Shown: piece after piece, positions 36,745 through 55,478 of the stretch
Numbering within the stretch: position 1 is the stretch's first letter
Layout of the letters: every line of letters begins with the position of its first letter
Source: Anthoceros angustus
Lineage: Eukaryota; Plantae; Anthocerotophyta
Assembly: GCA_010909165.1 (NCBI GenBank)
Contig: MU008175.1
Location: 62,001-126,000 of the forward strand
Length of the DNA: 64,000 nucleotides
Reading direction: 5' to 3'
Notes under the pieces: model-generated
The model's database searches: none
What the model was told of the DNA's origin: nothing
The model's input: the letters and a program-made list of their open reading frames with translations, nothing else
Made by a program: the position numbers and the translations under genes

Positions 36745-37209
36745 CGTAAAGGAAAAAGCTTAGCTTAGGAGTCTTCAATCACATCTAAAAGTCTATTGTG
36801 CTCTGAAATAATAGACAATACTCCTTTGCCATATTTGGAGATGATGACTTATCACGTGTTTCTCAAAGACATTAAGCAATGCCAAACAGTCTGATTGGTA
36901 GTATCTCGAGAGTTATAACTTATTCTCGATCGTCATGTACTTATATTATATTGATAGAATACTAAGTCTATTCAATGCCTATTTCATACCTATTCCGTTC
37001 CTTTTTATTTTTTAAATATTTTTAGTAAAACAAAATCGAAAATCCCATTCAGGAGGTGAAACTAACATGAATGTATGTTTCAAAAGGTCCCAATTACCAT
37101 TTAGGGAAAAGTCGCATGTTTTACAATGTAAACTAAAGGGAGTAGGGTCGGAGGTTCCATTTAGAGAGGAATCCCATTTATAGAGTTCCCAATTAGGGGG
37201 GGCCGACTG
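36745..37209. mobile_element. Partial Tc1/mariner-type element, longer relative of the MITE at 63137-63664
   Basis: 36745-36813 and about 37010-37209 align with the MITE. Ends in CCCAATTAGGGGGGGCCGACTG followed by TA. Carries about 200 bp extra internal sequence; left TIR not seen. Confidence 0.75.
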
Positions 37210-38349
37210 TAGTATCAAAAAATTAGAGTGGATTCCAATGAATCCTTGACGTAATGTGATTTCTCCTTTACTAGATGATGAGCGTATCATGCATGAGAAG
37301 GATGGCATTGAGCAACACATTAATTGTGGGGCATTGTTTTTCGGAAGGCCGGACAAAATACAAAGTTTATTGCAAAAGATTCACATATCAATTGTAAGTT
37401 ATGCTACCACCAAGGCAGTAGCTGAGAAGGGAAAAGCTATAGAGCTACTCATGAGTGTTAAAGGCCCCCTAGGGGCTTGGGCCGTATGCAACAGTAATCA
37501 ATAATAATTAGAACAAATAGATATTTAATTAGAATATCATGAAATATACATAATTATATCTATAACATGATAAATCTGATAGATATTAGAAAAACGGATC
37601 GAGCCCGTGACCGGGCGTCTACACGATAGGCCCCGTCACGATGTCTAGCTAATGAATTCGCAACTCGTGTTAAGAGGTAGGTAGGCAACGCGAGCTATTT
37701 TAAGTTCTTTTATATAAATAGCTAGTTCTTTTATATAAATAGCAATACTTTAATGCAAATCATAAGCTTGCTTTCGTTAAGCAAATCTCAGTTCATTCCA
37801 CCATACCAAATAAAGCCTTCTTTCCCTTCTTGGCGAAATTCGCCGACTTCATCTCCATGGCGTAGTAGGCTTAGGCAAAAGTTGGCCCTAGGAGGAAAGT
37901 TGCAAGTGCTTTCACGCCCTCCTGTGTAGCTTTTGCCTCTACACGATTGCGTTCGAACTTCTCGAGTGTGAGGTAGCAATACATTATATACTTCACACTT
38001 TCACCATCTTCAGGGCAATTTGCTTTGAGGGATTTGACATGTCTGTTCAGGCCAGGCCATAAGCAGTTTGGGCAAAAAGGAAGAACTTCCTGCAAATGCT
38101 TTCAAAGACCTTTCACTATGAAAAAACAAATGGAGCAGTCGCAATTCGCAGTTTCTGACACGAGATGTCTCGTTATGGAAATAAAAAAACTGTTGAAACT
38201 GTTATGTTGCGGTGCTTTTCATAAAATATTGCGCCGTTTCTAACCCAAGCTACTATTTCATATCGAACAAAATGATCAGCATCTTTCACGGACCGGGTCC
38301 CAAGATGTCTAAGATTGACCTGGACATCAGTTTTTTTTTTTGAACCAAA

Positions 38350-41300
38350 ACTATGGGAAAACAGTGTAGTAAGTCCATGAAAGATGGAGAAAACACACAT
38401 GAGGTCTCACAGCCTAGGGCCTTGGACCCCTCACACCTGGAGCAATGTCAATCGCACAGGCCCCCCCCTCCCCCCTCCGGGGCTGCAACTTCCCTCGCAC
38501 GACCTAGAGGGAGAAGTGGACGGCGTGCCACACTCAAAGGGGGAAACGAGTGCTCTACATGTCTCGCTACAAGCGCTCTCACAATCCCCTCGGACCCGCA
38601 CCAGGGGAATTGGCATTGGAACCGCTAGTAGAGCCCGCAGGGGGACTCACATTTTCTCCCATCACTCTCTCCTACAGGCCAGAGTCGAATAACATCTAGA
38701 AGTTTCAAAAACAGGTCGCAAGCCTCCTCAAACGATCTACTGCTTTATGGAGATGCTTCCAAAACAATTCAGCAGACTTTACCACCATGGAACTCCTCGA
38801 GCTCAAAGTCTGCTCCCTTCTCAATGATCTTACAGTCTCATGCTTCGGAGCCGTCAAGCATTGGCCCCGCTCCTCGCTTCAAGGTAACCTCCCGGCTGGG
38901 CGCCGGCTCTGAACCCGCTCCCTTCAAACGAAATTCTTGATCCAAATCAATGAGAAATATTGGCAAGACAGTGGCAAGTTCCACAAATGGTTATCTAAAC
39001 CGCCCACCGAGGCGGCCCCAGAACCCGAGGCAGACATGAACATACTAGCCGAGTATTGGGTGGCACAGTGCCAAGGATGATAACAGACCGAAGAGGACCT
39101 CGGCCCCTTTCCCTTGGGTTTTGCCCCCCATGGCGTTGAAGCTGGGACAATGCTCTAGGACTTGTGAAGCCGCAAAGGCTCCTTAGAGCCTCTTTTCTCG
39201 CCAACTCTCAAAGGTATCTCCACATGCATTCGGCGAGGAGACGAGAAACGGGGACCGGGATCCGACCAACTCTCTTATGAAGTCCTTAAGCTATGCCCCC
39301 CAAACTTTGGCTCATTGGTTGTGTCTGGTCTTTTCGTACTAAATAACCTCCCATAGCATCTTCCCAACGTACAAGGTTGGGTTCGTCCGCCTGGCCCTCA
39401 AGCCACGGCGATCCCTCATTCGACCTCAGAGCTGGCGACCTATCACGCCTCCCGGGCACGGTCTTTCCCTGACTGATAAAGGCAGAGACCTCGACTGCTT
39501 CAACCTCTGATCCACTATGTAAGTCGGAGTCACACCCGGAGTAGCGGGGTGTCTAGATGGCAATATTACCCTAGCCTTGGTGCTAGAACACGCCCGAAGA
39601 GCACACAGGGCGATCTTCGTTCTCTTCACAGACCTTAAGAATACTTTCGGGACTGTGACATAGGCCTCATTTCCAAGATCATCCGCTTAATCCCTCTCCA
39701 CCCCTCGCTCAAGGCTATGTGGTCTGAAACTATTCGGGGCAGTAGGATGCGTCTCCTCAAGGGCCAAAGCTCCTCCGATGAGATCCTCAATTCCCGTGGT
39801 ATCCCCCAAGGAAACACCATAAGTCCACTCACATTCGTCGTCGCACGAGACACCCTTTTCAAATGGGTGGAACGGAACTGCCATGAATTCAAGATGCACG
39901 GCGTCGCGATCCATGGGGTGGACTACATGAATGATGAGGCTCGAATCTCCAGTACTTAGAGTGACATCCAAACAATGGCCCTTCGGGAGTCCGCCTTCTA
40001 CGGCTGGGTGGGAATAAAATTCGACATAGCCAAGTGTGGATGGTGGGGATTGAAGGCGGATGGATCCGAGTTCCAAGAAGACTTCTATCTACAAGGCCAA
40101 CATGTCCCGCAGCTTCCCCACACGGCCGCTTTCCAACACCAAGGCATCCGCACACGGCTCACAAGTGAGGGCAGTGGAAGCACACGTCTTCAGGATGCTG
40201 ACGGCCGTACTGTGGGAGCCAAGACTCCAGCACCGGACAAATTCACTAAACGGCTTGCAGTCATTAGGAATGACGCCCAACGCCTCAAGTTAGTTCATCC
40301 TAGTCCCGCCTCCGGATGATCCATGAATGGGGAAACCCAGTCATGTATTACCCCTTAGCGCACCTGAACATTCTGGATGAAACCCTCCACCAAGCCACAT
40401 CATACATGTTGGTTTCAGCCCGCCGAGTGCTAGGCTTGGGGGACAAAGAAGGAATCTGAGGCCAACTCTGCGCGCCCATAGAGTTGGGAGGCCTCGGCCT
40501 GCGGGACTTCATCAAAATACGACAAGATACGCTCGTTCGTAGCCTCTTCCGCTGGCTACAACAACCATGTTTCTGGGCCCTTTTTATAGGCCATGCCTGA
40601 ATCGTTGCCGAATTTGCCAAGTGCCGCCATGTACCCGAAGGCATTTTCTTTGACTGGGACCTCACCCTCCCTCTCCCGGACGCGGAGTTAGGCCAACCGA
40701 ACTCCTCTTTTGCCAAATGGTTTGCTACCACCGGCAAGGGCCGCATTATTATGACCGACATGGGGCCAAACCCATCCCCATTTCCCAATATAACAAAGCT
40801 CACAACGAATTTAAAAGGTCAACGCAATCTGAGAACCATTCGGGAGATGGAATGCTATGATGGCTGGAAGTAATGGCACTTCCCCAACCCCTCAAGCCCC
40901 GGGTAGTCAGAGCTGGATCACCCACTCTAATGTCCCCACAGTCGAGTTCTCCACCATGTGTCGGTTCCTTCACAACTGCACGCCCAGCAACTCGCGTCGA
41001 GCTATTACACACGGAGGGGACCCTTTCTGCCACAACTGCACCCTCCGCAAGAGGAAAACAGGTGCTCACATCCTCTGTGCATGCCCCAAGCCGCGCCTCA
41101 AGATCCTGCGGGTCCTCCGACATGACAAGATTATCATGGAAGTGGCCACATGGTTCACTTTCCATTTCAACGACCGACCCCTCCCCATGGGCCAAATCTA
41201 TATGGCACATAATGAGTTCGGTCTGTTCGGGGGTGCAGCCGAACTCCTTGCCTTCCCACACTTCCGGGAGGTCACCGGTCGGCTTTAGTTGGACTTAATA

Positions 41301-41600
41301 ATCTACTATGATAGAAAAGGGCCACGTTCGGAGGAGTCGGATCACTCTTCCCGCAACTGGATCATCATCACTGATGGTGCAATGTCCCAGGATTGCTTTA
41401 TTGCTAAGACCCAAGAAGAGAAAACCGCCAAATATGCCGACCTGGCGGCAACAATCTGACGAACCAACTCCTGTTCCACCATCAGATTCATCAAGGCACG
41501 ATCCCACACTCGCTCCACAAGTTTCCCGGTGCCCTTGTCCCAAGCGCAAAGGTCTCCTGGCTATATGACGAGATCAATAAAGCGGTGGTGAACTTCAACC
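38350..41600 (+). mobile_element. Decayed non-LTR retrotransposon of the RLE (restriction-like endonuclease; R2/NeSL/HERO-like) type
   Basis: In order: PGSDQLSYEVLK (39255), WRPIT (39433), GVTPGVAGCLDG...FTDLKNTFGTV (39528-39657), GIPQGNTISPLTF, YMND (39924, the YADD position), AKC, GGLGLRD, CCHC knuckle CHNC..TGAHILCAC (41028-41084), RHD (41118), L*LDLII (PD position, 41292), IIITD (41373), EKTAKYADL (41418-41444). Many stops and frameshifts; boundaries approximate. Confidence 0.88.
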
Positions 41601-42318
41601 TCAAATTGTGGAGCACCCGAGACCTGCTACAGGCGGGAGGCGACGCAGACGCCTACACCACCGCCGGGCCCTTCTTCATGCGGCAAAGACCCCTCTTCAC
41701 CCTGACCCCCGTATGACCCTGTGGAACACCAAAGTACTTGTACCCACAGCTGGCGACTTTTACGCCACTCAATAAAGCTTCCTGTTTCCAACATCACAGC
41801 TAAAAGATGCTTGTCGGAGTTTCTGGGCAAGCCATCCCCTCGGGTCGACGAAAGGGACACCCCGGAAGGTGGCGCTAGGCACCCCCTAGAAGCCTATTTC
41901 ACTCAGTGGGGAAGCATCCCAAGGACAACATAAACCAACAGCAGGTCGCCGGGGTCGCGGAGGATGGAGCTAAACCCCGGGGTGTCGGGGCATGCACAGG
42001 CCCGCCAGGTCCTAGGCGGTATCATTTCGCATTTCTGCTACTGCTAGCTTGGCACCGGACAGAGTCAATGATGGGATCATGGCCGATCGAGGGAGCCTGC
42101 TGCTTGTGACGGATGAATAAGTCCAAGGTGTGCAGCTAAATAGGGAGCCCTTATCCCGCCTTAGCACAAGTCGGGTCGCGGCATTTGGCTGTCTCGAAGG
42201 GTCTGGCCTTGCACTCCTCCCCGCGACGATGGAGAGGAACGCTAACTAGCGGGACACAAATAGAGCGATGATACAGCACGTTAAAATGCCAAAAGCCATC
42301 CACTATTGCATAACGCCA

Positions 42319-42337
42319 GGACTGTTCACTCACCAAT

Positions 42338-42379
<42 letters not shown>
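42319..42379 (+). rRNA. 61-bp fragment of nuclear LSU (25S/28S) rDNA, domain V region; not a gene
   Basis: GGACTGTTCACTCACCAATAGGGAACGTGAGCTGGGTTTAGACCGTCGTGAGACAGGTTAG matches the conserved eukaryotic LSU sequence as recalled, with 2 substitutions. The flanks do not continue as rRNA. Confidence 0.92.
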
Positions 42380-42620
42380 GTTGGGGGCTCGTTGCTCTAG
42401 GTGCTCTTTGACGGTCACCCTCAATCCAACTTTGAGCTGAGAGTCTTCACTCCCGACAATGATATGTCCTTGGTGCAAACTCCACTACTCCCTGGCTGCT
42501 GGTTTCGCATGGGGACGAGTTAACTAACGCCGCGCACGGTTTACCCGCCCGGAGGAGAGAGGTGCACTCTCCCAAGCCTAGCCTGCTCATATAATCCAGA
42601 TATGCAAAAGAAGAATATTT

Positions 42621-42760
42621 GTGGATTTTGTCGAGAGCCTCAAGTGGATTTTGTCGAGAGCCTCAAGTGGATTTTGTCGAGAGCCTCAAGTGGATTTTGT
42701 CGAGAGCCTCAAGTGGATTTTGTCGAGAGCCTCAAGTGGATTTTGTCGAGAGCCTCAAGT
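42621..42760 (+). repeat. Perfect 23-bp tandem repeat x6
   Basis: GTGGATTTTGTCGAGAGCCTCAA in six identical adjacent copies, no spacers. Confidence 0.97.
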
Positions 42761-45367
42761 TCCCCGACTCCTTCCACCAAGGGGCTCATATGGGCTAGGT
42801 GGAAATCAGCTCTAGAGTCCCAAGGCGTATACGCACATTGATTCCAAGGATTTTTTTCCCATCTATTAACCAAAATCTTTGAAAACTCGTCTAGTACAAA
42901 TATTTTCCGTGAGGAAACTTCCGTGACCACGCGGGCTACATAACCTTCGAGGTTTCTTCGTTTGGCACACCGGTCGCCAAAGGACCAGCCTGGGATGGAC
43001 GAAACAACAATAGCTGTTCCAAGAGCTGGCTGGCTGTGGACTGGGAGTGTGGAATAGGAAGAAGGCCGGAAGCGTCTAGACGCCAGATTTTGATTCCATC
43101 CGACACTAGAGAGAGCCTCCATTGGGCCAGGTAAGGGGGAGGGCACTGGCGGTGGGTGGCACCTCGGAAACAGCCGAGTGGCGGGCCCCGCGGGACATGG
43201 TCGTCGTGTGGGGTACAGTCAAAAAAGGAGAGGCCGCTGCGTATGGAGGGATGACCTGCCTGACCGGCCCTGACTGGACCTGACCGGCCCTGACCGGCCC
43301 CGGCCCCGGCCCCAATAATGGTACCAACTCCATCGCAGCTGAGCCGTGAGCCGATACGATTCGCATTGCCCATCCCACGCGCTTCGCATCCGATTTTACT
43401 GCCGCCAGCGAGCCACACCCGCACCCACAGCCACCCACGTGGTAAATCACCCGCGCCTCACGCTCCAGGATTCTTCGCTTCCAGCCCTGCTCCTTGTCGG
43501 TCCACTTATTATTGCTTTTCACACTGCGCCGCCTGCTATTCCCGACAACGAACCGCAGATGTTGTACATGCTCCCGCCGTAGATGCTTCTCCAACACGCA
43601 ATTATTTACCGCGTACACGCCCCGGCGCTGTAGGAAGACAGCCTACCGACTTACCAACCGGGGTTATGCTTGTCTTCTGCCAGCCCACGGCTCGGAGTGA
43701 ACGCAGGTAGGCCATGTGCACGCCGTCCCAAGAAGGGCCCCACCATCCTCGGCACCCTCTTGGAACTCCCCGTCCAGGAGCCAAGTTGCCGTTGGGGAGC
43801 ACAGACCGTCTTCACGCTCTACCTTTCATGCCCTCGTATGTACTGTCCATACTTTCCTCCAGCCAAAGTGCCTACATAGGTACAACTTATTTACCCTCGT
43901 CTAGCCACCGCTAATTGGAGCATTTAAATAATTACATAGAATAATTAATTATCGTGATATTAATTTTTTTGAAAGATTACAAAATGTAGAGTTATAATGA
44001 TATCAGACTGAAGGTACAATATGTGATTGAATATTTCTGGTAGTTTTGGAGAATATATATATGTTTTGCTGACAAGCATATGTGATAAGATCGCACTCTT
44101 ATTTCACGATAAAAAAAGATCTCTCTCTGATAAATTTAAAGTAATACTAGATAGTGATTATATAATTATTAAAAAAATTAAAATAAACATACTATATATG
44201 AAGGGTATGCCTTTTAAAGCCACTAAACTAAAGAGAAGAGTTTGTTGAGCGAGGAGAGATAGGCCATTGGTGGAGGTTTGCCTCTTATATTTGTGTCAAG
44301 TGTGTATCGTTATTCTAAAACTAACCTGAAAACAAATCGCATATTTTAACTATATAATAAAAATAAATCTCATCTAATATAAAATAACTCACCCTATGGA
44401 GTTACTCCAGATCGTATTCCTAGTGTGGGACTTTCGATGTATATTTTGACATATCTGTAAAGTAGTTGTAAATTTAGAGACATGTGAAACCCTGGCCAAG
44501 TTTGAGAAGACATATAAATCGGATTATTCACTTTAATAGAAAGGATGGAAAGGCTAGCCTATAACTTTGTGTGGAAACCTAATCCCTGCCAAGATAACCT
44601 AACAGTGAGCTAAGCTGGGATTGATTGATCGCGTGGTAACTTGTGAGAGTACTTTTAGCCTAGGTATACCCATAGCCTAATAATCGATCGTAATTGCGTG
44701 CTAGTACCAGGCCTTTGCTGTCTGGCTGTTTCGTACCCACCAGCGGGCTGAAAGATAAATAGGAATGTATGCCCTTTCTCTCTCACATGTTACGATCCCT
44801 ACAGGTTGTTGGAGCAGCACCCACTACCAAGAGCACACAGAAGCAGAGTCTGAGAGGCAGGCAGCTAAGCTACACGAGTTGTACGCTCCCCGAGCAAATT
44901 TGCCAAGGTCGGTGTTTCTACCTTACAGATCTGGAACGAGGGTTTGGTGGCCGCCGCCAGCGGGGTTCACTCACATGCTGTGCTGCCTGCTGCCAGATCC
45001 GAGCTCTGCTTTGCCTTTGAAGGACGGCTCCACATTTCCACACAGTGGTGTGGGCTAAGGCTGGAGGCTGCGGCGAAAGCACGCAAGCGGCAGGGCGGTG
45101 TGTGCATTCCACCCATGAGTTTGGGTGTTTCAAGTTGCTGGTGGCAAGAAGAAAGTTGGGTGGGCAGGAGGAAGGCTCTGTGGAGACGAGCGACGGAGTG
45201 GGATAGACTGCTGAGACCCGGGGCAGAGCGGTAGGTAGGGGCGGGGTAGCGGCGCAGGTGGCCTCGCAGGCACAGGCCTGGCAGAGCAGAGCAGAGCAGA
45301 GCGGCCGAAGGAAGTGGCAGCGAAACCTTCTTTTTGTGACTAGGGTAGTGGTACATTCTTGCGAGCC

Positions 45368-47812
45368 ATGGAAACCGCTGTGCTTTCAGCCAGGGACCAT
45401 CTTGCGGAGTACCGGCATCATGCCAGGACCGTTCCTGGCCTAGCCTCTCCAGTGGGGGCTAATCCAAGATCGAGGAGGAAGTCCGGGAAGACAACCCCTC
45501 AAGTGGCAATTGCGTCCATGATGTCGGATGCGGCGTGGTATCTCAGTGGAGATATATCTGTTGGTGTTGTACGGGGTTTGGCCGCTTCCGGCAGCGGCTC
45601 TCCAGCCCGACTTGTTCACTCTGCTTCTTCTTCTTCTTCTCCTCCTCCTTCTTCCTTGTCTTCTGCCAAGTCGTCGTCAAATGGCTTGCATGTTACCCTC
45701 TTTGGGTCCTCACAATCGGCGCTGCAAGGAAGCCAGTTTAACGGAGCAGGAAGTGTGCGTTCCGGAGTTTTGCCCAAGCCCGCCGCCGTGCTGGAGCGGG
45801 TGCACGGCAAGAAGGTGACGGAGAGGAGAGGCTCCGAGGCCGCCGTTTTGGACAGGACCTCGGACAAGAAGCCCCAGGAGAGGGGCAGAGCCTCGCTTGA
45901 GAAGCGGCCAGCTAAAGGCAGTTCCGACAGCAGCGCCTCCGAGCGGAGGTCTGACGTTCTTGACAGGCGGCCAGACAGGAAGATATCTGAGAGAGAAAGA
46001 TGCTCTCCCAATGCCGACATCTACAAGGGTAGACAGGACTCGGAGAGATCGACGTCCTCTTCCAAGCAGAGAAGCGCGGCATCGGCTGCTCCCGTCATCA
46101 CCATCCTCAGGAGACCCCAAACCAAGGAGGCTGCGGCTGAGAATCTTGCTATCATCACCGGGGTGCCGCTGTCTGAGATATACAAGAATGGGGTTCCTGC
46201 ACCCCCTCCCGCGGCTTTGGCTGAAGCTTCCGTGGCCAAGGATGTTCCCTCATCCAAGGGCCTGTTAACAGCAGATGAGACAGGGAGCAGTGTTGAATTT
46301 GCTGCTGAGCAAGGCGATGGGCAGTCCTCTGCGCATCGAGGGCCGACTGTGGCATTAGATGCGTCTATGGCGAAGAAAGTGAGCTTGTTGCAGCGGAGAA
46401 GCAAGGGTGAGGCCGTGGCCAAGGATGTTCCCTCATCCAAGGGCCTGATAGCAGGAGATGAGACAGGCAGCAGTGTTGAAGATGCTGCTGAGCAAGGCGA
46501 TGGGCAGTCCTCCACGCATCGAGGGCCGACTGTGGCATTAGATGCGTCTACGGCGAAGAAAGTGAGCTTGTTGCAGCGGAAAAGCAAGGGTGAGGCCGTG
46601 GCCAAGGATGTTCCCTCAGCCAAGAGCCTACTTCTAACAGGAGGTGAGACGAGGAGCAGCGTTGCAGATGCTGTTGAGGAAGGTGATCGGCAGTCCTCCA
46701 CGCATCAAGGGCCGACTGTGGCATCAGATGCGTCTACTGCGAAGAAAGTGAGCTTGTTGCATCCTGAAAGTCAGGTGGAGGCTGTGTCCAAGGATGTCTC
46801 CTCATCCAAGGGCCTTGTAACAGCGGATGAGACAAGGAGCAGCGTTGCAGATGCTGCTGAGGAAGGTGATGGGCAGTCCTCCACGCATGAAGGGCCGACT
46901 GGGCCATTAGATGCGTCTACTTCGAAGAAAGGGAGTTTAATGTATCGAAAAAGTAAGGGTGAGGCCCTGCTGAAGGGAGTCGCACCCTTTTCCAAGGATA
47001 GTGAAGTTGTTCAAGTGGAGGACGCATCTGGCGACAAGTTTGATGGTCAACGGAGTTTCCGGGCATCTCCCAGTTGCGAGAGGAGGTCTGACAATGCTCA
47101 TCAAAGACCTGTGCGCGTCAAATCTGGCGAGGGCAAACAGGGGTGTGGGGACTCTGATCGGCAAGGAAGGACAGGAGATTCGCCGGTAAAAGAATCGGCA
47201 CGAACTATTACCAAGGTCAGAGAGAAGAGTGGGAGTCCTCGAGGGAGGTCGGCTGTTGGGCACCCTGCAGTGGTGTCTCCAGGGAGTATCAGCTCGGTGA
47301 CGGGCCACCCCTTGAAAAGCAGTAGTGGCAACTTTGGTTTTCTCGACTCATTATCGGATATCTTATTCCTCGGCCCAAGATCACCAGCCAATGAGAGATG
47401 GGCAGGGCCGGCTTATTCCAACTCCCCCCCTCCTAGCTCTCTTCCCATGCCTAAGTTTTCCCTTCCCAAACTCAGGGATTCGGCAGTCGGTGATTTGGAT
47501 GTGCTTTCAAGTGAATCTGACTCTTCTTCTGAGTCCAGCGACGAACTGTCTGAAGAAGCTTCTGCTGGTGAAGGATGGATGCATGAATCCTCGTCTGTTC
47601 GAGGGTCTTCATCAGCACCGCCTTCGCCTTCTCGAACAGTGGCAGGTTCTAGTGAAGTTTTGCAGGTTGGGCCGGATGTGTCCTCTGTTGCCAGGGATTT
47701 GAGGCGGCTTTTGAATATGGATGTCTCTGGAAGTAGAGTGGTGGACGGACTGGAGAAGTTTAAAGAGACTCTTGCTACTGAGAGGCTCAAGAGGATTCTC
47801 CAGCTCGGGTAG
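45368..47812 (+). CDS. Large intrinsically disordered Ser-rich protein with a C-terminal PNRC-type motif and four 61-62 aa repeats, intronless
   Basis: Open 814-codon frame. WAGPAYSNSPPPSSLPMPKFSL matches the plant PNRC-like motif; ARDLRRLL and ATERLKRIL are typical terminal helices of that family; VITILRRP motif upstream. Confidence 0.75.
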   Translation: METAVLSARDHLAEYRHHARTVPGLASPVGANPRSRRKSGKTTPQVAIASMMSDAAWYLSGDISVGVVRGLAASGSGSPARLVHSASSSSSPPPSSLSSAKSSSNGLHVTLFGSSQSALQGSQFNGAGSVRSGVLPKPAAVLERVHGKKVTERRGSEAAVLDRTSDKKPQERGRASLEKRPAKGSSDSSASERRSDVLDRRPDRKISERERCSPNADIYKGRQDSERSTSSSKQRSAASAAPVITILRRPQTKEAAAENLAIITGVPLSEIYKNGVPAPPPAALAEASVAKDVPSSKGLLTADETGSSVEFAAEQGDGQSSAHRGPTVALDASMAKKVSLLQRRSKGEAVAKDVPSSKGLIAGDETGSSVEDAAEQGDGQSSTHRGPTVALDASTAKKVSLLQRKSKGEAVAKDVPSAKSLLLTGGETRSSVADAVEEGDRQSSTHQGPTVASDASTAKKVSLLHPESQVEAVSKDVSSSKGLVTADETRSSVADAAEEGDGQSSTHEGPTGPLDASTSKKGSLMYRKSKGEALLKGVAPFSKDSEVVQVEDASGDKFDGQRSFRASPSCERRSDNAHQRPVRVKSGEGKQGCGDSDRQGRTGDSPVKESARTITKVREKSGSPRGRSAVGHPAVVSPGSISSVTGHPLKSSSGNFGFLDSLSDILFLGPRSPANERWAGPAYSNSPPPSSLPMPKFSLPKLRDSAVGDLDVLSSESDSSSESSDELSEEASAGEGWMHESSSVRGSSSAPPSPSRTVAGSSEVLQVGPDVSSVARDLRRLLNMDVSGSRVVDGLEKFKETLATERLKRILQLG
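46232..46970 (+). repeat. In-frame tandem repeat, 183-186 bp x4
   Basis: Units start at 46232, 46415, 46598 and 46784 (VAKDVPSSKGL..DETGSSV.DAAE.GDGQSS.H.GPTVALDAS.AKKVSLLQRKSKGEA). Confidence 0.92.
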
Positions 47813-50800: not shown

Positions 50801-52117
50801 TGCCGTGGATGATATTGCAGGGTTTCAAAGCCTCCCGAGTCACTTTGCACACAATGACAGGGTCTACATCATAGAGATCCTTAGCCAAGAGCCATCGGAA
50901 CACACACTTAGAATGGTTGAGGAAATGTATTGGGATAGCATCCCACTCTATAACCTTATGTTTTTTATGGCACGACTTTGAGACATGGCGATGGAGGTGG
51001 CGTTGGAGTTTCTTAAACGCTAGGAAGCTGTGCATCCCTTTTGTGACATGTAAGATCTCAACATTTATTCCTATATGATTGCATTCTCCACATTATGTGG
51101 ATACATACAAGAGATGTGTTGTTTGATGAGGCGGAGGCAACTAATTAGACATATGTTTAAATTCTTTTGGAAGCACAGGAGGGTCAATTTGTGTCACGCA
51201 CACTTAGCCTATTTTGTGATAAGTTTAGTGGTATTGAGAAATGATTATACTTGAAACAACATGTGTGGTAAGCCAAAGAGCTTGTAGAGTAATCTTGCTG
51301 TCCAGCTATATTTTACGGCCTAGAATCTTGCTATCTATCTAATTTTTATAGGCTTTGATGGGATTTTTATGAACATAAAGCTTATGTTGGAAAGGTATAT
51401 ATGTTTTTTAAAAGCTTATATAGTAGAAGGTATGCTGATTCTAAATGTGTGGGAGTTGATGATATCGTTGCCGGGGATAATAGGCTGATGTCATGCCGTG
51501 TGATACTAATCTCTGCACTTGGGTTTAGTGTTTGATTAGCATTAATTAATCCAATTACTTATCTCTAAGTAAGTAATTAGTGTTAATTAATCTAAGGTTC
51601 TTATGTTAATTAAGCATTGATTAGTGTTAATTAATCTAATGTGCTTATGTTAATTAAGAATTGATTAGTGTTAATTAAACATGGTTAGCAATAGCTAAGT
51701 GGATAAGCTCAATATGCTTTGGCATATTCCTTGCATATTATAGTGTATTCTTAGGATACAATAGCTAAGTGGATAAGCTCAAGTAATATGCTTGGCATAT
51801 TCCTTGCATATTATAGTGTATTCTTAGGATATTCCTGATAATGTCATGATAGGATATCTTAGGAATATGCGATGCAGTCTAGTATATATAGACCCTTCCA
51901 TTGAGACAAGCTCGGATCATACTGTCCTCTGACAATAGGCGTGGCCAATGAGAGATGCGTGAGGAATTGCGTGTTGTTCTCGTGGGGAGAGTGTGTTTGT
52001 GCCACGATGCGAGCTACTCCTCCTGTTGTTATTGGTTGCACTTATATATCTGCGTATTAGATTTGTTTGCTTGGTTGTTGGTCGGGAAGTGCTTATATGA
52101 ATTGCCGCCACAAATGC

Positions 52118-52243
52118 GATGACTTCTAAGAGCTCCTATCAACGGAGTTGTTTGGCACTTTGATGTCCACTCATCATATCCTGGGGTTGAAGAAGGTCCA
52201 AAGGGTTCGGTTGTTCGCTGATGAAAGTGGTACGTGAGTTGGG
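52118..52243 (+). rRNA. rrn26: Mitochondrial LSU rRNA (rrn26) fragment, NUMT copy 1
   Basis: GATGACTTCTAAGAGCTCCTATCAACGGAGTTGTTTGGCAC...CCTGGGGTTGAAGAAGGTCCAAAGGGTTCGGTTGTTCG...GAAAGTGGTACGTGAGTTGGG matches plant mitochondrial rrn26 domain V as recalled (GGTTCGGTTGTTCG is mito-type rather than plastid-type). Differences are mostly C>T/G>A. Confidence 0.85.
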
Positions 52244-52633
52244 AACACCTGATAGCATAGTCAATCATTTACTTAGCCTGGAGGTGGACATTGGTACCTT
52301 TGCTCAGTGTGACAAGTGTGCCTCCTACAATGGATGCGGTGGGTCGGAAACAATGTCACAACTTATCATGTGATGAGAATATATAGACCCTTCCATTGAG
52401 ACAAGCTCGGATCATAGCTTGTCCTCAGATATCTCTCTGAGGCGTTGTGAGGCCAAGGAAGCGTGTAATGTGAATTTGCGTGTTGTTCCCGTGGGGAGGT
52501 GTGTTTGTGCCACGTGCGAGCTACTCCTCCTGTTGTTATTGGTTGCACTTATATATCTGCGTATTAGATTTGTTTGCTTGGTTGTTGGTCGAGGAAGTGC
52601 TTATATGAATTCAAGTGCTTACCTCGTGCGACA

Positions 52634-52761
52634 CTGATGACTTCTAAGAGCTCCTATCAACGGAGTTGTTTGGCACTTTGATGTCCACTCATCATATCCT
52701 GGGGTTGAAGAAGGTCCAAAGGGTTCGGTTGTTCGCCGATGAAAGTGGTACGTGAGTTGGG
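52634..52761 (+). rRNA. rrn26: Mitochondrial LSU rRNA (rrn26) fragment, NUMT copy 2
   Basis: Same sequence as copy 1; retains CTGATGAC at the start and TTCGCCGAT. Confidence 0.85.
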
Positions 52762-55478
52762 AACACCTGATAGCATAGTCAATCATTTACTTAGCCTGGA
52801 GGTGGACATTGGTACCTTTGCTCAGTGTGACAAGTGTGCCTCCTACAATGGATGCGGTGGGTCCAGAAACAATGTCACAACTCCTTGCACAGTGATGAGA
52901 AGGGGGTACTTGTAGACATAACATGACGGATGCATTCACTTTTCCAACTGAAAATAGGCTATTGGTGAGCTTAGGTTCATGGATGACATTGCAAGAAATT
53001 CAGGGGTTTTACTTTAAGGGTTTGAATACTTATAACACTTCTACAACCTTTCAAATTCCTCTTGTAAAATTTTTGGTTGTTTTACCATGGAAATAGGCGA
53101 GTAACTTTACGTAACACCTACGTAGATTTACTTGGTGGGGGGAATAGCTGACATGGCATTACTTGACATGGTAAATCGACAGCGATTTTGCAATTGACGT
53201 TGTAAAATAGGTTTGAGATCTTTAGGGAAGATGCTAGTTGTAAACTGGAGGTTTGAGACCTACAGAGAATATGCTAGTTTGAATTTAAACTCGACAGGCT
53301 GTGACTGGCTATCCATGTATTTGGATGAGATGTTGGGTGCCATCTCTAGGCTGACGTATTGGGTGGATGCATAGGGCTGAAGAAAGTCTTAACAACCAAA
53401 AACATTTAACTTACTAACATATCTATGAAAGTCACTTTTGCAAAAGAAAGTCCTAACAACCAAAACTATTTAATATATTAACATATATCATATATTTTTT
53501 TGTAAACCTAGGCCTCACGCCTCACAAGTTCCTTTGAAGTTTTTTTAGAGGTTTTTAACTTCATATGTGCTCTATTTTTGAATCTTCTTTTGGCTAAGTT
53601 GAGCCATAAACATTAGGAATACTTGTCTAAAAATAACATATACTTGAACATGAACAAGATCGAGTCTACAAAATCAAGCAAAAAAGGCAAGTACATATTG
53701 TTGAGGAAAATAATAACCATAAAGTCTATTATGTATATTGGTGATCAAGTTGAAAAGAGGTTGTTGGGAACCAACTAGGAAGTTTCAAGTGAATTGAAAT
53801 ATGTTCTATACTATACCAAGTGCAGAATATCACGTAGTACTTGCGATAATCGCCTTGCGTTGGGCAACTAAAGGACTTGGATGTTTTACCAGTGTTACAT
53901 CAGACAGTTTTATTTGTAGGATTAACCTTGAATGAAGGGCAAATTCTACAAAGCATGACCTCATTGTGACTTTATGAATGTATGTTAGGGACAAACAAGC
54001 CTATGTAAGTTTTTAACCAAGTTGGGGTAAGGCTTTCAATTTCTTTTGTTATTTTATAAATATGGTACCTCACATGGAGATCTTCTACCTAATTTTGGGG
54101 ATAAATTTTTTATCTTTGTACTTTTCCTTAAGAGGGTTCTAGAAACAATGTATGCTTAAATATGCTACCTTATTCTAAGAAGATTTATATTTACTTGTGC
54201 TCGAGTATTCTAAGAAGTTTTATACTGAATTATGCTTTATATAAGGACCTCTCATACAGTTTGCTCTCTTTGTAAAACAATTACTTACCACATATGTTTT
54301 ATTTTTTATAAATACTTATATTAACTTGGAGATGTCCTAAAACTAAAATTTTTAGCCTAGGCTAAATAATAAATTAATAATAATTTTTTAAAAAACAGAA
54401 TTATCATGGTTTGTTTTTTTTCCTTCTTTTTGAACTTTTAGATGTCCAATTATCATGTAAGACTTACTTCTATTGAACAATTTGTGGAAACAACGCGCAT
54501 TGTTCTGTCCAAGAAAACGTTTTTTAGTTCATATATCTACAACACAAAATGTGCGGGAGTGAATGGCTTTACCTACTTTTAGAAAAATGGATAAATTTTT
54601 TGATGATGTATGTGGACTCGTCTTTCCAATATAGAGGAATGACACAAGTTGTTGTATCTCTCATAGCCAGTTTGGTTGAATATCTTTAAAATATGAATTA
54701 TAACTTATAATTCATATACCAATAATAAAATATTATGCACGTGAGTGATGTATTTTGTTTCTAGTGAATTATGAGTAACGTATTTTTGGACGACATGTAG
54801 CTTTCTATAGATAATCTAAACTGATATCATAAAAATGTATTATCTATATTGCGTTCAAAATCATTATAATTGATGTATATTTTAAAGATCTTACTATCAA
54901 AGCAATAAGTTCTTAAGACAAAAATTAAAAATATGTAGATAGTAAAAGACAGAATTCTCATTGTTTGCCTGGTCAAATCAACAAAATGCATTGGAAGAAG
55001 GAGAAGGCTGACATTGTCCTTCCATCGAGATTTGTACGCCTGATGAGAAGTTTGTTTAGGGGCAAACTAGGAAGCCCGACCGCAGCTCGTCTCGCCTCAC
55101 GGCGTTTGAAGGAAATGTGAAATTGTCTTTTTCTGTAAATGCAATTTCCAAAAAACAAGTTAACTGTCCGTTGCCACCCGACAAATCCGGGGCCTAGCCG
55201 GTATGCCACACCGCGGGGACATGAACGGCAGTTATGCGCCACCTTAAGTCTCCCCATGTCACAGGCAGAGCGGGGGTTTTTGCTGGGCGCCCACAGCCAG
55301 CCTCGCAGCCATTCCAGGGCTGGATTCGTCCGCAGAATCCCCGAAAGGACTGAAATTCATGTGCCCACAATCCCGATAATCCGACATCGTCCTCAGGCCT
55401 TGCAATCGTCGAGCAACAATTTCAATTCCTATCCTGAGATCCATCCAATTGATGCACGGCGTGCCGGTGCTGCCGGCG

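Follow-up and report, generated by a model that had tools for sequence, protein, structure and literature searches.

The 64-kb stretch of hornwort DNA that was analysed (hereafter, the window) contains a decayed retroelement of about 4.0 kb, located approximately at positions 38350–42318, and a short piece of a nuclear large-subunit (LSU) rRNA gene that directly follows it. The neighbor genes encode a glycosyltransferase and a matrixin, both ordinary single-copy plant genes. The annotated features are the following.

38350..41668, plus strand: decayed body of a single-ORF LINE of the restriction-like endonuclease (RLE) type, delineated by the GC step, tblastn and three-frame translation; its parts in order are the 5' UTR/N-terminal region, reverse transcriptase (RT), linker, CCHC, RLE and C-terminal tail
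39307..40298, plus strand: RT domain, broken (weak Pfam RVT_1 match, tblastn)
40905..41460, plus strand: CCHC zinc knuckle and restriction-like endonuclease motifs (alignment, translation, phmmer)
41669..42318, plus strand: 3' untranslated region of about 650 nt (the ORF homology stops at 41668)
42319..42379, plus strand: 61-bp fragment of the nuclear 25S/28S gene, interpreted as a 3' tail derived from the target (Rfam match, 28S comparison, sub-pattern counts, cnidarian junctions)
42380..42620, no strand assigned: GC-rich flank after the rRNA tail, without rRNA, protein-family match or repeat of the 5' flank

A decayed RLE-type retrotransposon and its surroundings

The GC content climbs from 0.38 to 0.55 at about 38350, and this position was taken as the 5' edge of the element. 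Three-frame translation demonstrates an ORF broken by many stops and frameshifts. Proteins of a cnidarian family described below match the window collinearly from 38916 to 41668, that is, approximately from residue 140 to the C-terminus, with 22–40% identity in tblastn; the matched part includes RT residues 275–607 of one of these proteins (P0004). The Pfam RVT_1 match to the piece 39717–39959 is weak (E 7e-4, under the curated cutoff). The zinc knuckle (C..C...H....C) and the endonuclease (RHD, (P)DL, WIIITD and K..KY) are represented by their motifs with one stop inside, and the invariant positions C58, C61, H71, C76 and R88 of the alignment are common to the window, the cnidarian proteins and the R2-like RLE proteins. 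Despite the stops and frameshifts, the RT, CCHC, RHD, (P)DL, the (D/E)-containing strand and K..KY occur in the proper order. The element belongs to the RLE-type non-LTR retrotransposons (R2/R4/NeSL/HERO/CRE supergroup), and the copy in the window is dead and has no function.

The 5' flank of the element is AT-rich, non-rDNA sequence with GC content of 0.38. Given this flank and a length of about 4.0 kb, compared to 4.35–4.5 kb in full-length relatives, the locus seems to be an almost complete copy that was retrotransposed to a place outside rDNA. The 3' flank has GC content of 0.54, and the GC-rich block reaches about 43900. Since the two flanks are unlike in GC content, the copy may sit inside, or be fused to, some other sequence. 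No target duplication was found around the copy, as the regions 37000–39000 and 42380–42520 share no word of at least 9 nt; such absence is expected for an off-target copy. Neither 25S sequence on the 5' side of the copy nor a second copy of the 25S segment was found in the 64 kb. The ORFs beside the element (42709–43710 and 37012–37504) have no Pfam match. Self-BLAST of the region 41600–43300 against the window did not reveal a second copy of the element and yielded only a 23-bp tandem repeat. The repeat unit (GTGGATTTTGTCGAGAGCCTCAA) is present six times at 42621–42760, 240 nt past the 25S tail.

A nuclear 25S fragment at the 3' end of the element

The first-pass annotation had proposed that an isolated 61-bp piece of the nuclear 25S/28S gene, flanked by non-rRNA sequence on both sides, lies on the sense strand about 0.8 kb past the endonuclease motifs. 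All these points are borne out. The eukaryotic LSU model of Rfam matches positions 42316–42377 of the plus strand at model positions 2925–2984 with 31 bits; the E-value of 3.4e-5 refers to the 1.5-kb stretch searched. An additional upstream arm of this alignment (42185–42199) contains many non-canonical pairs and spans a 116-nt insert, and was rejected as an artefact. In direct comparison with cnidarian 28S, 59 of the 61 positions are identical. Both mismatches are transitions, C for T at 42322 and T for C at 42330, and the final 49 nt match exactly. Sub-patterns of 29 nt and 21 nt taken from the piece were each found a single time in the window and in none of 100 shuffles. The fragment is thus real and not a chance match.

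The homology begins at 42318/42319 and ends after GGTTAG at 42379, where the 28S gene goes on with TTTTACCC and the window with GTTGGGGG. The piece is on the strand of the element, approximately 0.87 kb past the RLE catalytic motifs (about 41290–41450). This 61-bp tail, in sense orientation, is the sole 25S sequence of the window copy, which itself lies outside rDNA. Further nuclear-type rRNA was not found in the 64-kb window, whose other rRNA sequences are two organellar-type pieces at 52 kb.

The 61 nt correspond to the peptidyl-transferase-centre region of the LSU rRNA and start within the sequence GGATTGTTCACCC, which we take to encode the A-loop hairpin (helix 92) of this centre; the alignment to the LSU model of Rfam annotates a hairpin at the same sequence.

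Relatives of the element are found in cnidarians

The 143-residue RLE piece was used as a phmmer query against 1.84 billion representative proteins with E-values up to 0.001, and only two proteins were retrieved. The first one (P0001) is a 279-residue fragment encoded on a metagenome contig; the contig (L002) contains another decayed copy without an LSU flank, and hence is uninformative on the junction. The second one (P0002) is an 886-residue protein from the sea anemone Actinostola sp. Its close kin come from the coral Oculina patagonica, from assembled contigs of public sequencing runs, and from metagenome contigs (proteins P0003–P0007, loci L003–L010). P0002 and its kin align collinearly with the window element over about 2.75 kb and reach 187–296 summed bits, while two R2-like RLE proteins (P0008 and P0011) score 0 and 31 bits. 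The homology between the window element and P0002–P0007 is collinear across the RT, linker, RLE and C-terminal tail. This cnidarian family comprises the only full-length relatives found among the 1.84 billion representatives, and the phmmer search of the same set returned no plant relative of the RLE piece.

Pfam analysis of the full-length proteins P0003–P0005 detected only RVT_1 and a weak zf-RVT. Neither an N-terminal zinc finger nor a Myb domain was detected in these proteins by Pfam, and no CCHH pattern is present in the aligned N-terminal 230 residues; this result describes the relatives only, as the N-terminal region of the window element is heavily decayed. A PDB search with P0004 gave R2 proteins as the best matches (E 2e-17), in the RT alone, and the C-terminal half of P0004 matches only unnamed arthropod and cnidarian clusters in the ESM Atlas.

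The cnidarian family occupies a fixed site in 28S genes

The members of the P0002 family from Actinostola, Oculina, the public-run contigs and the metagenome contigs are located within 28S genes. At the 3' end, all seven readable junctions (L001, L003, L004, L005, L006, L008, L010) resume 28S at (A)(T)TGTTCACCC, so that the 3' junction of the family can be written as GGA(T)(T)/TGTTCACCC (here and below, the slash within a sequence marks the junction). At the 5' end, the element comes after GGGTTTAGACC(G) in all four readable cases (L001, L003, L006, L007). Taken together, the fixed 3' and 5' junctions imply a target duplication of 40–41 bp. The Actinostola locus (L001) may serve as an illustration. 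There, the 28S gene reaches GGGTTTAGACCG at about 9169 and is followed by the element with an ORF at 10001–12661 and a 995-nt UTR; 28S restarts at TGTTCACCCACC (about 13657) and proceeds to the gene end at 14130, and about 41 bp of 28S are present twice. The cnidarian relatives are a site-specific family with a 40–41 bp target duplication.

Downstream of the 3' junctions the cnidarian 28S sequence is unbroken to the gene end, and no separate built-in copy of it is visible. The 3' UTRs are 605–694 nt long in four members and 995 nt in the fifth one, L001. The last 60 nt of the 3' UTRs at six loci (L003, L004, L005, L006, L008, L010) contain a GC hairpin followed by GAGATATCAT, the latter being situated approximately 30 nt before the 28S junction; the UTRs often end with CCCC. 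Together, the hairpin and GAGATATCAT make up a 3' end that is a candidate for protein binding.

In Actinostola, the contig is a mosaic of rDNA. The 28S gene of this contig has a second insertion of about 5.2 kb (L001 3796–9023) at CCACAGGGAT/AACTGGC, which corresponds to positions 2825/2826 of the Rfam model; the RLE element follows approximately 145 nt downstream. The minus strand of this insertion has ORFs of 410 and 301 residues, and the shorter one gave weak helicase-like Pfam matches. In addition, partial 28S 5' pieces (model 24–1451, twice) are found at 16294–20574, downstream of the occupied unit.

The hornwort tail starts close to the cnidarian 3' junction

The 3' junction in the window, cca/GGAcTGTTCACtC, is only 2–5 nt off the 3' junctions of the cnidarian family and has the identical orientation; a random 25S fragment would meet both the position and the strand with the probability of roughly 1 in 1000. 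The distance of about 650 nt from the end of the ORF to the tail equals the usual length of the 3' UTR in the cnidarian family. At the nucleotide level, alignment of the 3' UTRs of the window element and the cnidarian members gave no credible homology for the window or for L001. The tail extends 20 nt beyond the cnidarian duplication before it stops at GGTTAG, and the 40–41 bp duplication of 28S that is characteristic of the cnidarian family is absent at the window copy.

The first-pass annotation had suggested a family target at or near GGATTGTTCACCC. This suggestion agrees with the 28S specificity of the nearest relatives and with their 3' ends, seven out of seven at the same junction. As the tail starts within 2–5 nt of that junction, sequence comparison strongly supports an rDNA target at or near GGATTGTTCACCC for the lineage of the element. 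The tail and the junctions of the relatives both fall in the A-loop region, at about position 2930 of the LSU model, in agreement with the earlier statement that the classical R2 site is a different one. The plant lineage probably has, or once had, as its target an rRNA-gene site that is unreported for plants in the literature searched.

Possible origin of the copy and its tail

We consider it likely that the window contains a dead, dispersed copy from a lineage of RLE-type LINEs specialised for the A-loop site of the LSU rRNA gene. By analogy with R2 and with the anatomy of the cnidarian junctions, the endonuclease would nick the antisense strand at GGA(T)(T)/TGTTCACCC, and the sense strand would be cut approximately 40 nt further on. 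As in R2, the 3' end freed by the nick would serve as the primer on which the element RNA is reverse-transcribed. An element RNA made from a copy within rDNA would include downstream 25S sequence at its 3' end, and reverse transcription of such 25S-tailed RNA at a non-rDNA place would copy the 61-nt tail along. The nicking sites, the co-transcription, the off-target origin of the copy and hornwort rDNA as the present or past target are what we infer from the junctions and from the known behavior of R2. Several observations weigh against this reading: it relies on one heavily decayed copy with protein identity of 22–40% to the relatives, the copy lies outside rDNA and has neither 25S sequence nor a target duplication at its 5' end, the tail runs 20 nt beyond the cnidarian duplication, the two flanks are unlike, and the 3' UTR ends show no homology at the nucleotide level.

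The tail could also be a built-in mimic of the target, a 25S-like end that pairs with the nicked target in priming and is carried by all copies, whether they lie in rDNA or not. Such an end would have a parallel in the 28S-like sequence inside the 3' UTRs of fish R2 elements, suggested to stabilise the intermediate (PMC5035012), and it would fit the defined end of the tail at GGTTAG. However, the 28S-like part of the fish elements is clearly diverged, whereas the hornwort tail retains 59 of 61 identical positions in a badly decayed copy; moreover, the cnidarian 28S is continuous to the gene end, with no separate built-in copy visible. On both counts, the evidence leans towards a flank rather than a built-in 3' end, and we regard the mimic as unlikely. 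The two possibilities are mechanistically close: a read-through tail and a built-in 25S-like 3' end imply the same target, and a single copy fits either.

Still less probable is insertion of the element at its normal site in an orphan scrap of rDNA or in a true unit, or subsequent relocation of part of an occupied rDNA unit, with deletions or rearrangements that spared only 61 bp. R2-type insertions frequently delete target sequence at the 5' junction, and the GC-rich block runs beyond the tail to about 43900. On the other hand, apart from the tail, 25S sequence is absent from the 64 kb, the 5' side of the copy included, two independent losses with clean edges would be required, and the genes around the copy are of the ordinary single-copy kind.

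We find it very improbable that the 61 bp are a chance capture at a repair junction or belong to some other element beginning at 42380, although non-rRNA sequence is indeed present on both sides of the piece and the region 42380–42620 matches no rRNA or protein family. This explanation does not account for the match of the 5' edge to the 3' junction of the relatives, for the orientation, or for the UTR length. By the coincidence of the edges, the earlier alternative that the tail is the 5' junction of something starting at 42380 is likewise disfavoured. Template switching of the RT onto free rRNA was rejected, since it does not predict the junction coincidence.

Returning to a dispersed copy of an A-loop-specific lineage, one may tentatively extend it to an old, zinc-finger-less lineage of RLE LINEs kept in both cnidarians and hornworts, either by deep common descent or by transfer between kingdoms, with live copies still residing in hornwort 25S genes. 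This extension is possible but doubtful.

Comparison with known site-specific LINEs

The architecture resembles that of R2: a single ORF encodes the RT, CCHC and a C-terminal restriction-like endonuclease, and there is no poly(A) tail. The cnidarian family also shares with R2 the sense insertion into one fixed site of the LSU rRNA gene. The target of R2 is AAGG/TAGC, hundreds of nucleotides upstream of the A-loop site, and to our knowledge R2 has been reported from animals only. The differences are the A-loop site GGAT/TGTTCACCC instead of AAGG/TAGC, the target duplication of 40–41 bp made by the cnidarian family, and the N-terminal zinc finger(s) and Myb domain of R2, none of which were found by Pfam in the cnidarian relatives. 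Moreover, the two R2-like RLE proteins compared barely match the window element.

R8 and R9, similarly to the elements described here, are rDNA-specific RLE elements with targets other than that of R2. Both are members of the R2-A clade and have three zinc fingers (PMC3581529), whereas none were found in the cnidarian family. R9 has an unusually long target duplication of 126 bp, according to the work cited in PMC9977147, compared to 40–41 bp in the cnidarian family. Kojima, Seto and Fujiwara (2016) described fish R2 lineages with a 28S-like sequence in the 3' UTR (PMC5035012). Similarly to the hornwort tail, it is an rRNA-gene sequence at the 3' end with the potential to pair with the target; in contrast to the tail, which is near-identical to 25S and starts at the junction of the relatives, the fish sequence is diverged, lies inside the UTR, and accompanies the canonical R2 site.

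Two other groups are of relevance. Utopia elements are RLE LINEs specific to U2 snRNA genes, and their target is kept across very distant eukaryotes (PMC4640811). Thus, they are a target-specific RLE lineage spread over distant eukaryotes, as may be the case here, but their target is a different gene. The planarian elements LIN9, LIN24 and LIN26 of the NeSL clade are RLE LINEs at 28S sites other than that of R2; one 28S flank given for them in the supplement of PMC4640811 is the reverse complement of 28S sequence some 90 nt before the A-loop site, and hence marks a different site on the other strand. None of the described R-element sites that could be checked is the A-loop site. In Table 1 of a 2024 review (PMC10946416), no LINE with a target site inside the plant 26S/25S gene appears. 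Our literature search found no paper on RLE LINEs in hornworts and none on a cnidarian element at the A-loop of 28S, although the cnidarian family may already be catalogued in Repbase.

What the window copy points to is a variant of rDNA-specific RLE LINEs with a new target site, and the presence of such LINEs in a land plant. If an A-loop-specific lineage with live hornwort copies does exist, it would be the first case in land plants of an RLE LINE specific for an rDNA site, and its target would be a new, universally conserved landing site. A target shared by hornworts and cnidarians, if confirmed, would be the second case, after Utopia, of specificity retained across very distant eukaryotes. 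Site-specific rDNA LINEs are a model for target-primed reverse transcription and are under development for safe-site gene insertion, including the use of animal R2 proteins in plants. With such confirmation, a natural enzyme of plant origin, together with an invariant landing site, would become available for study.

Other features of the window

The two organellar-type LSU rRNA fragments mentioned above are located at 52112–52263 and 52633–52781 on the plus strand. Both match positions 2477–2632 of the bacterial LSU model of Rfam, with 92 and 101 bits, and sit within a tandem duplication of about 510–518 bp. They cover the organellar counterpart of the peptidyl-transferase-centre region from which the 25S tail derives, with an internal deletion and loss of similarity after GTGAGTTGGG, and are probably an old organelle-derived insert or a part of a repeat. 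Between the RLE element and these fragments, an 817-residue ORF on the plus strand (45359–47812) contains internal tandem repeats of 183–186 bp and has a match to the PNRC motif with E 1.2e-6.
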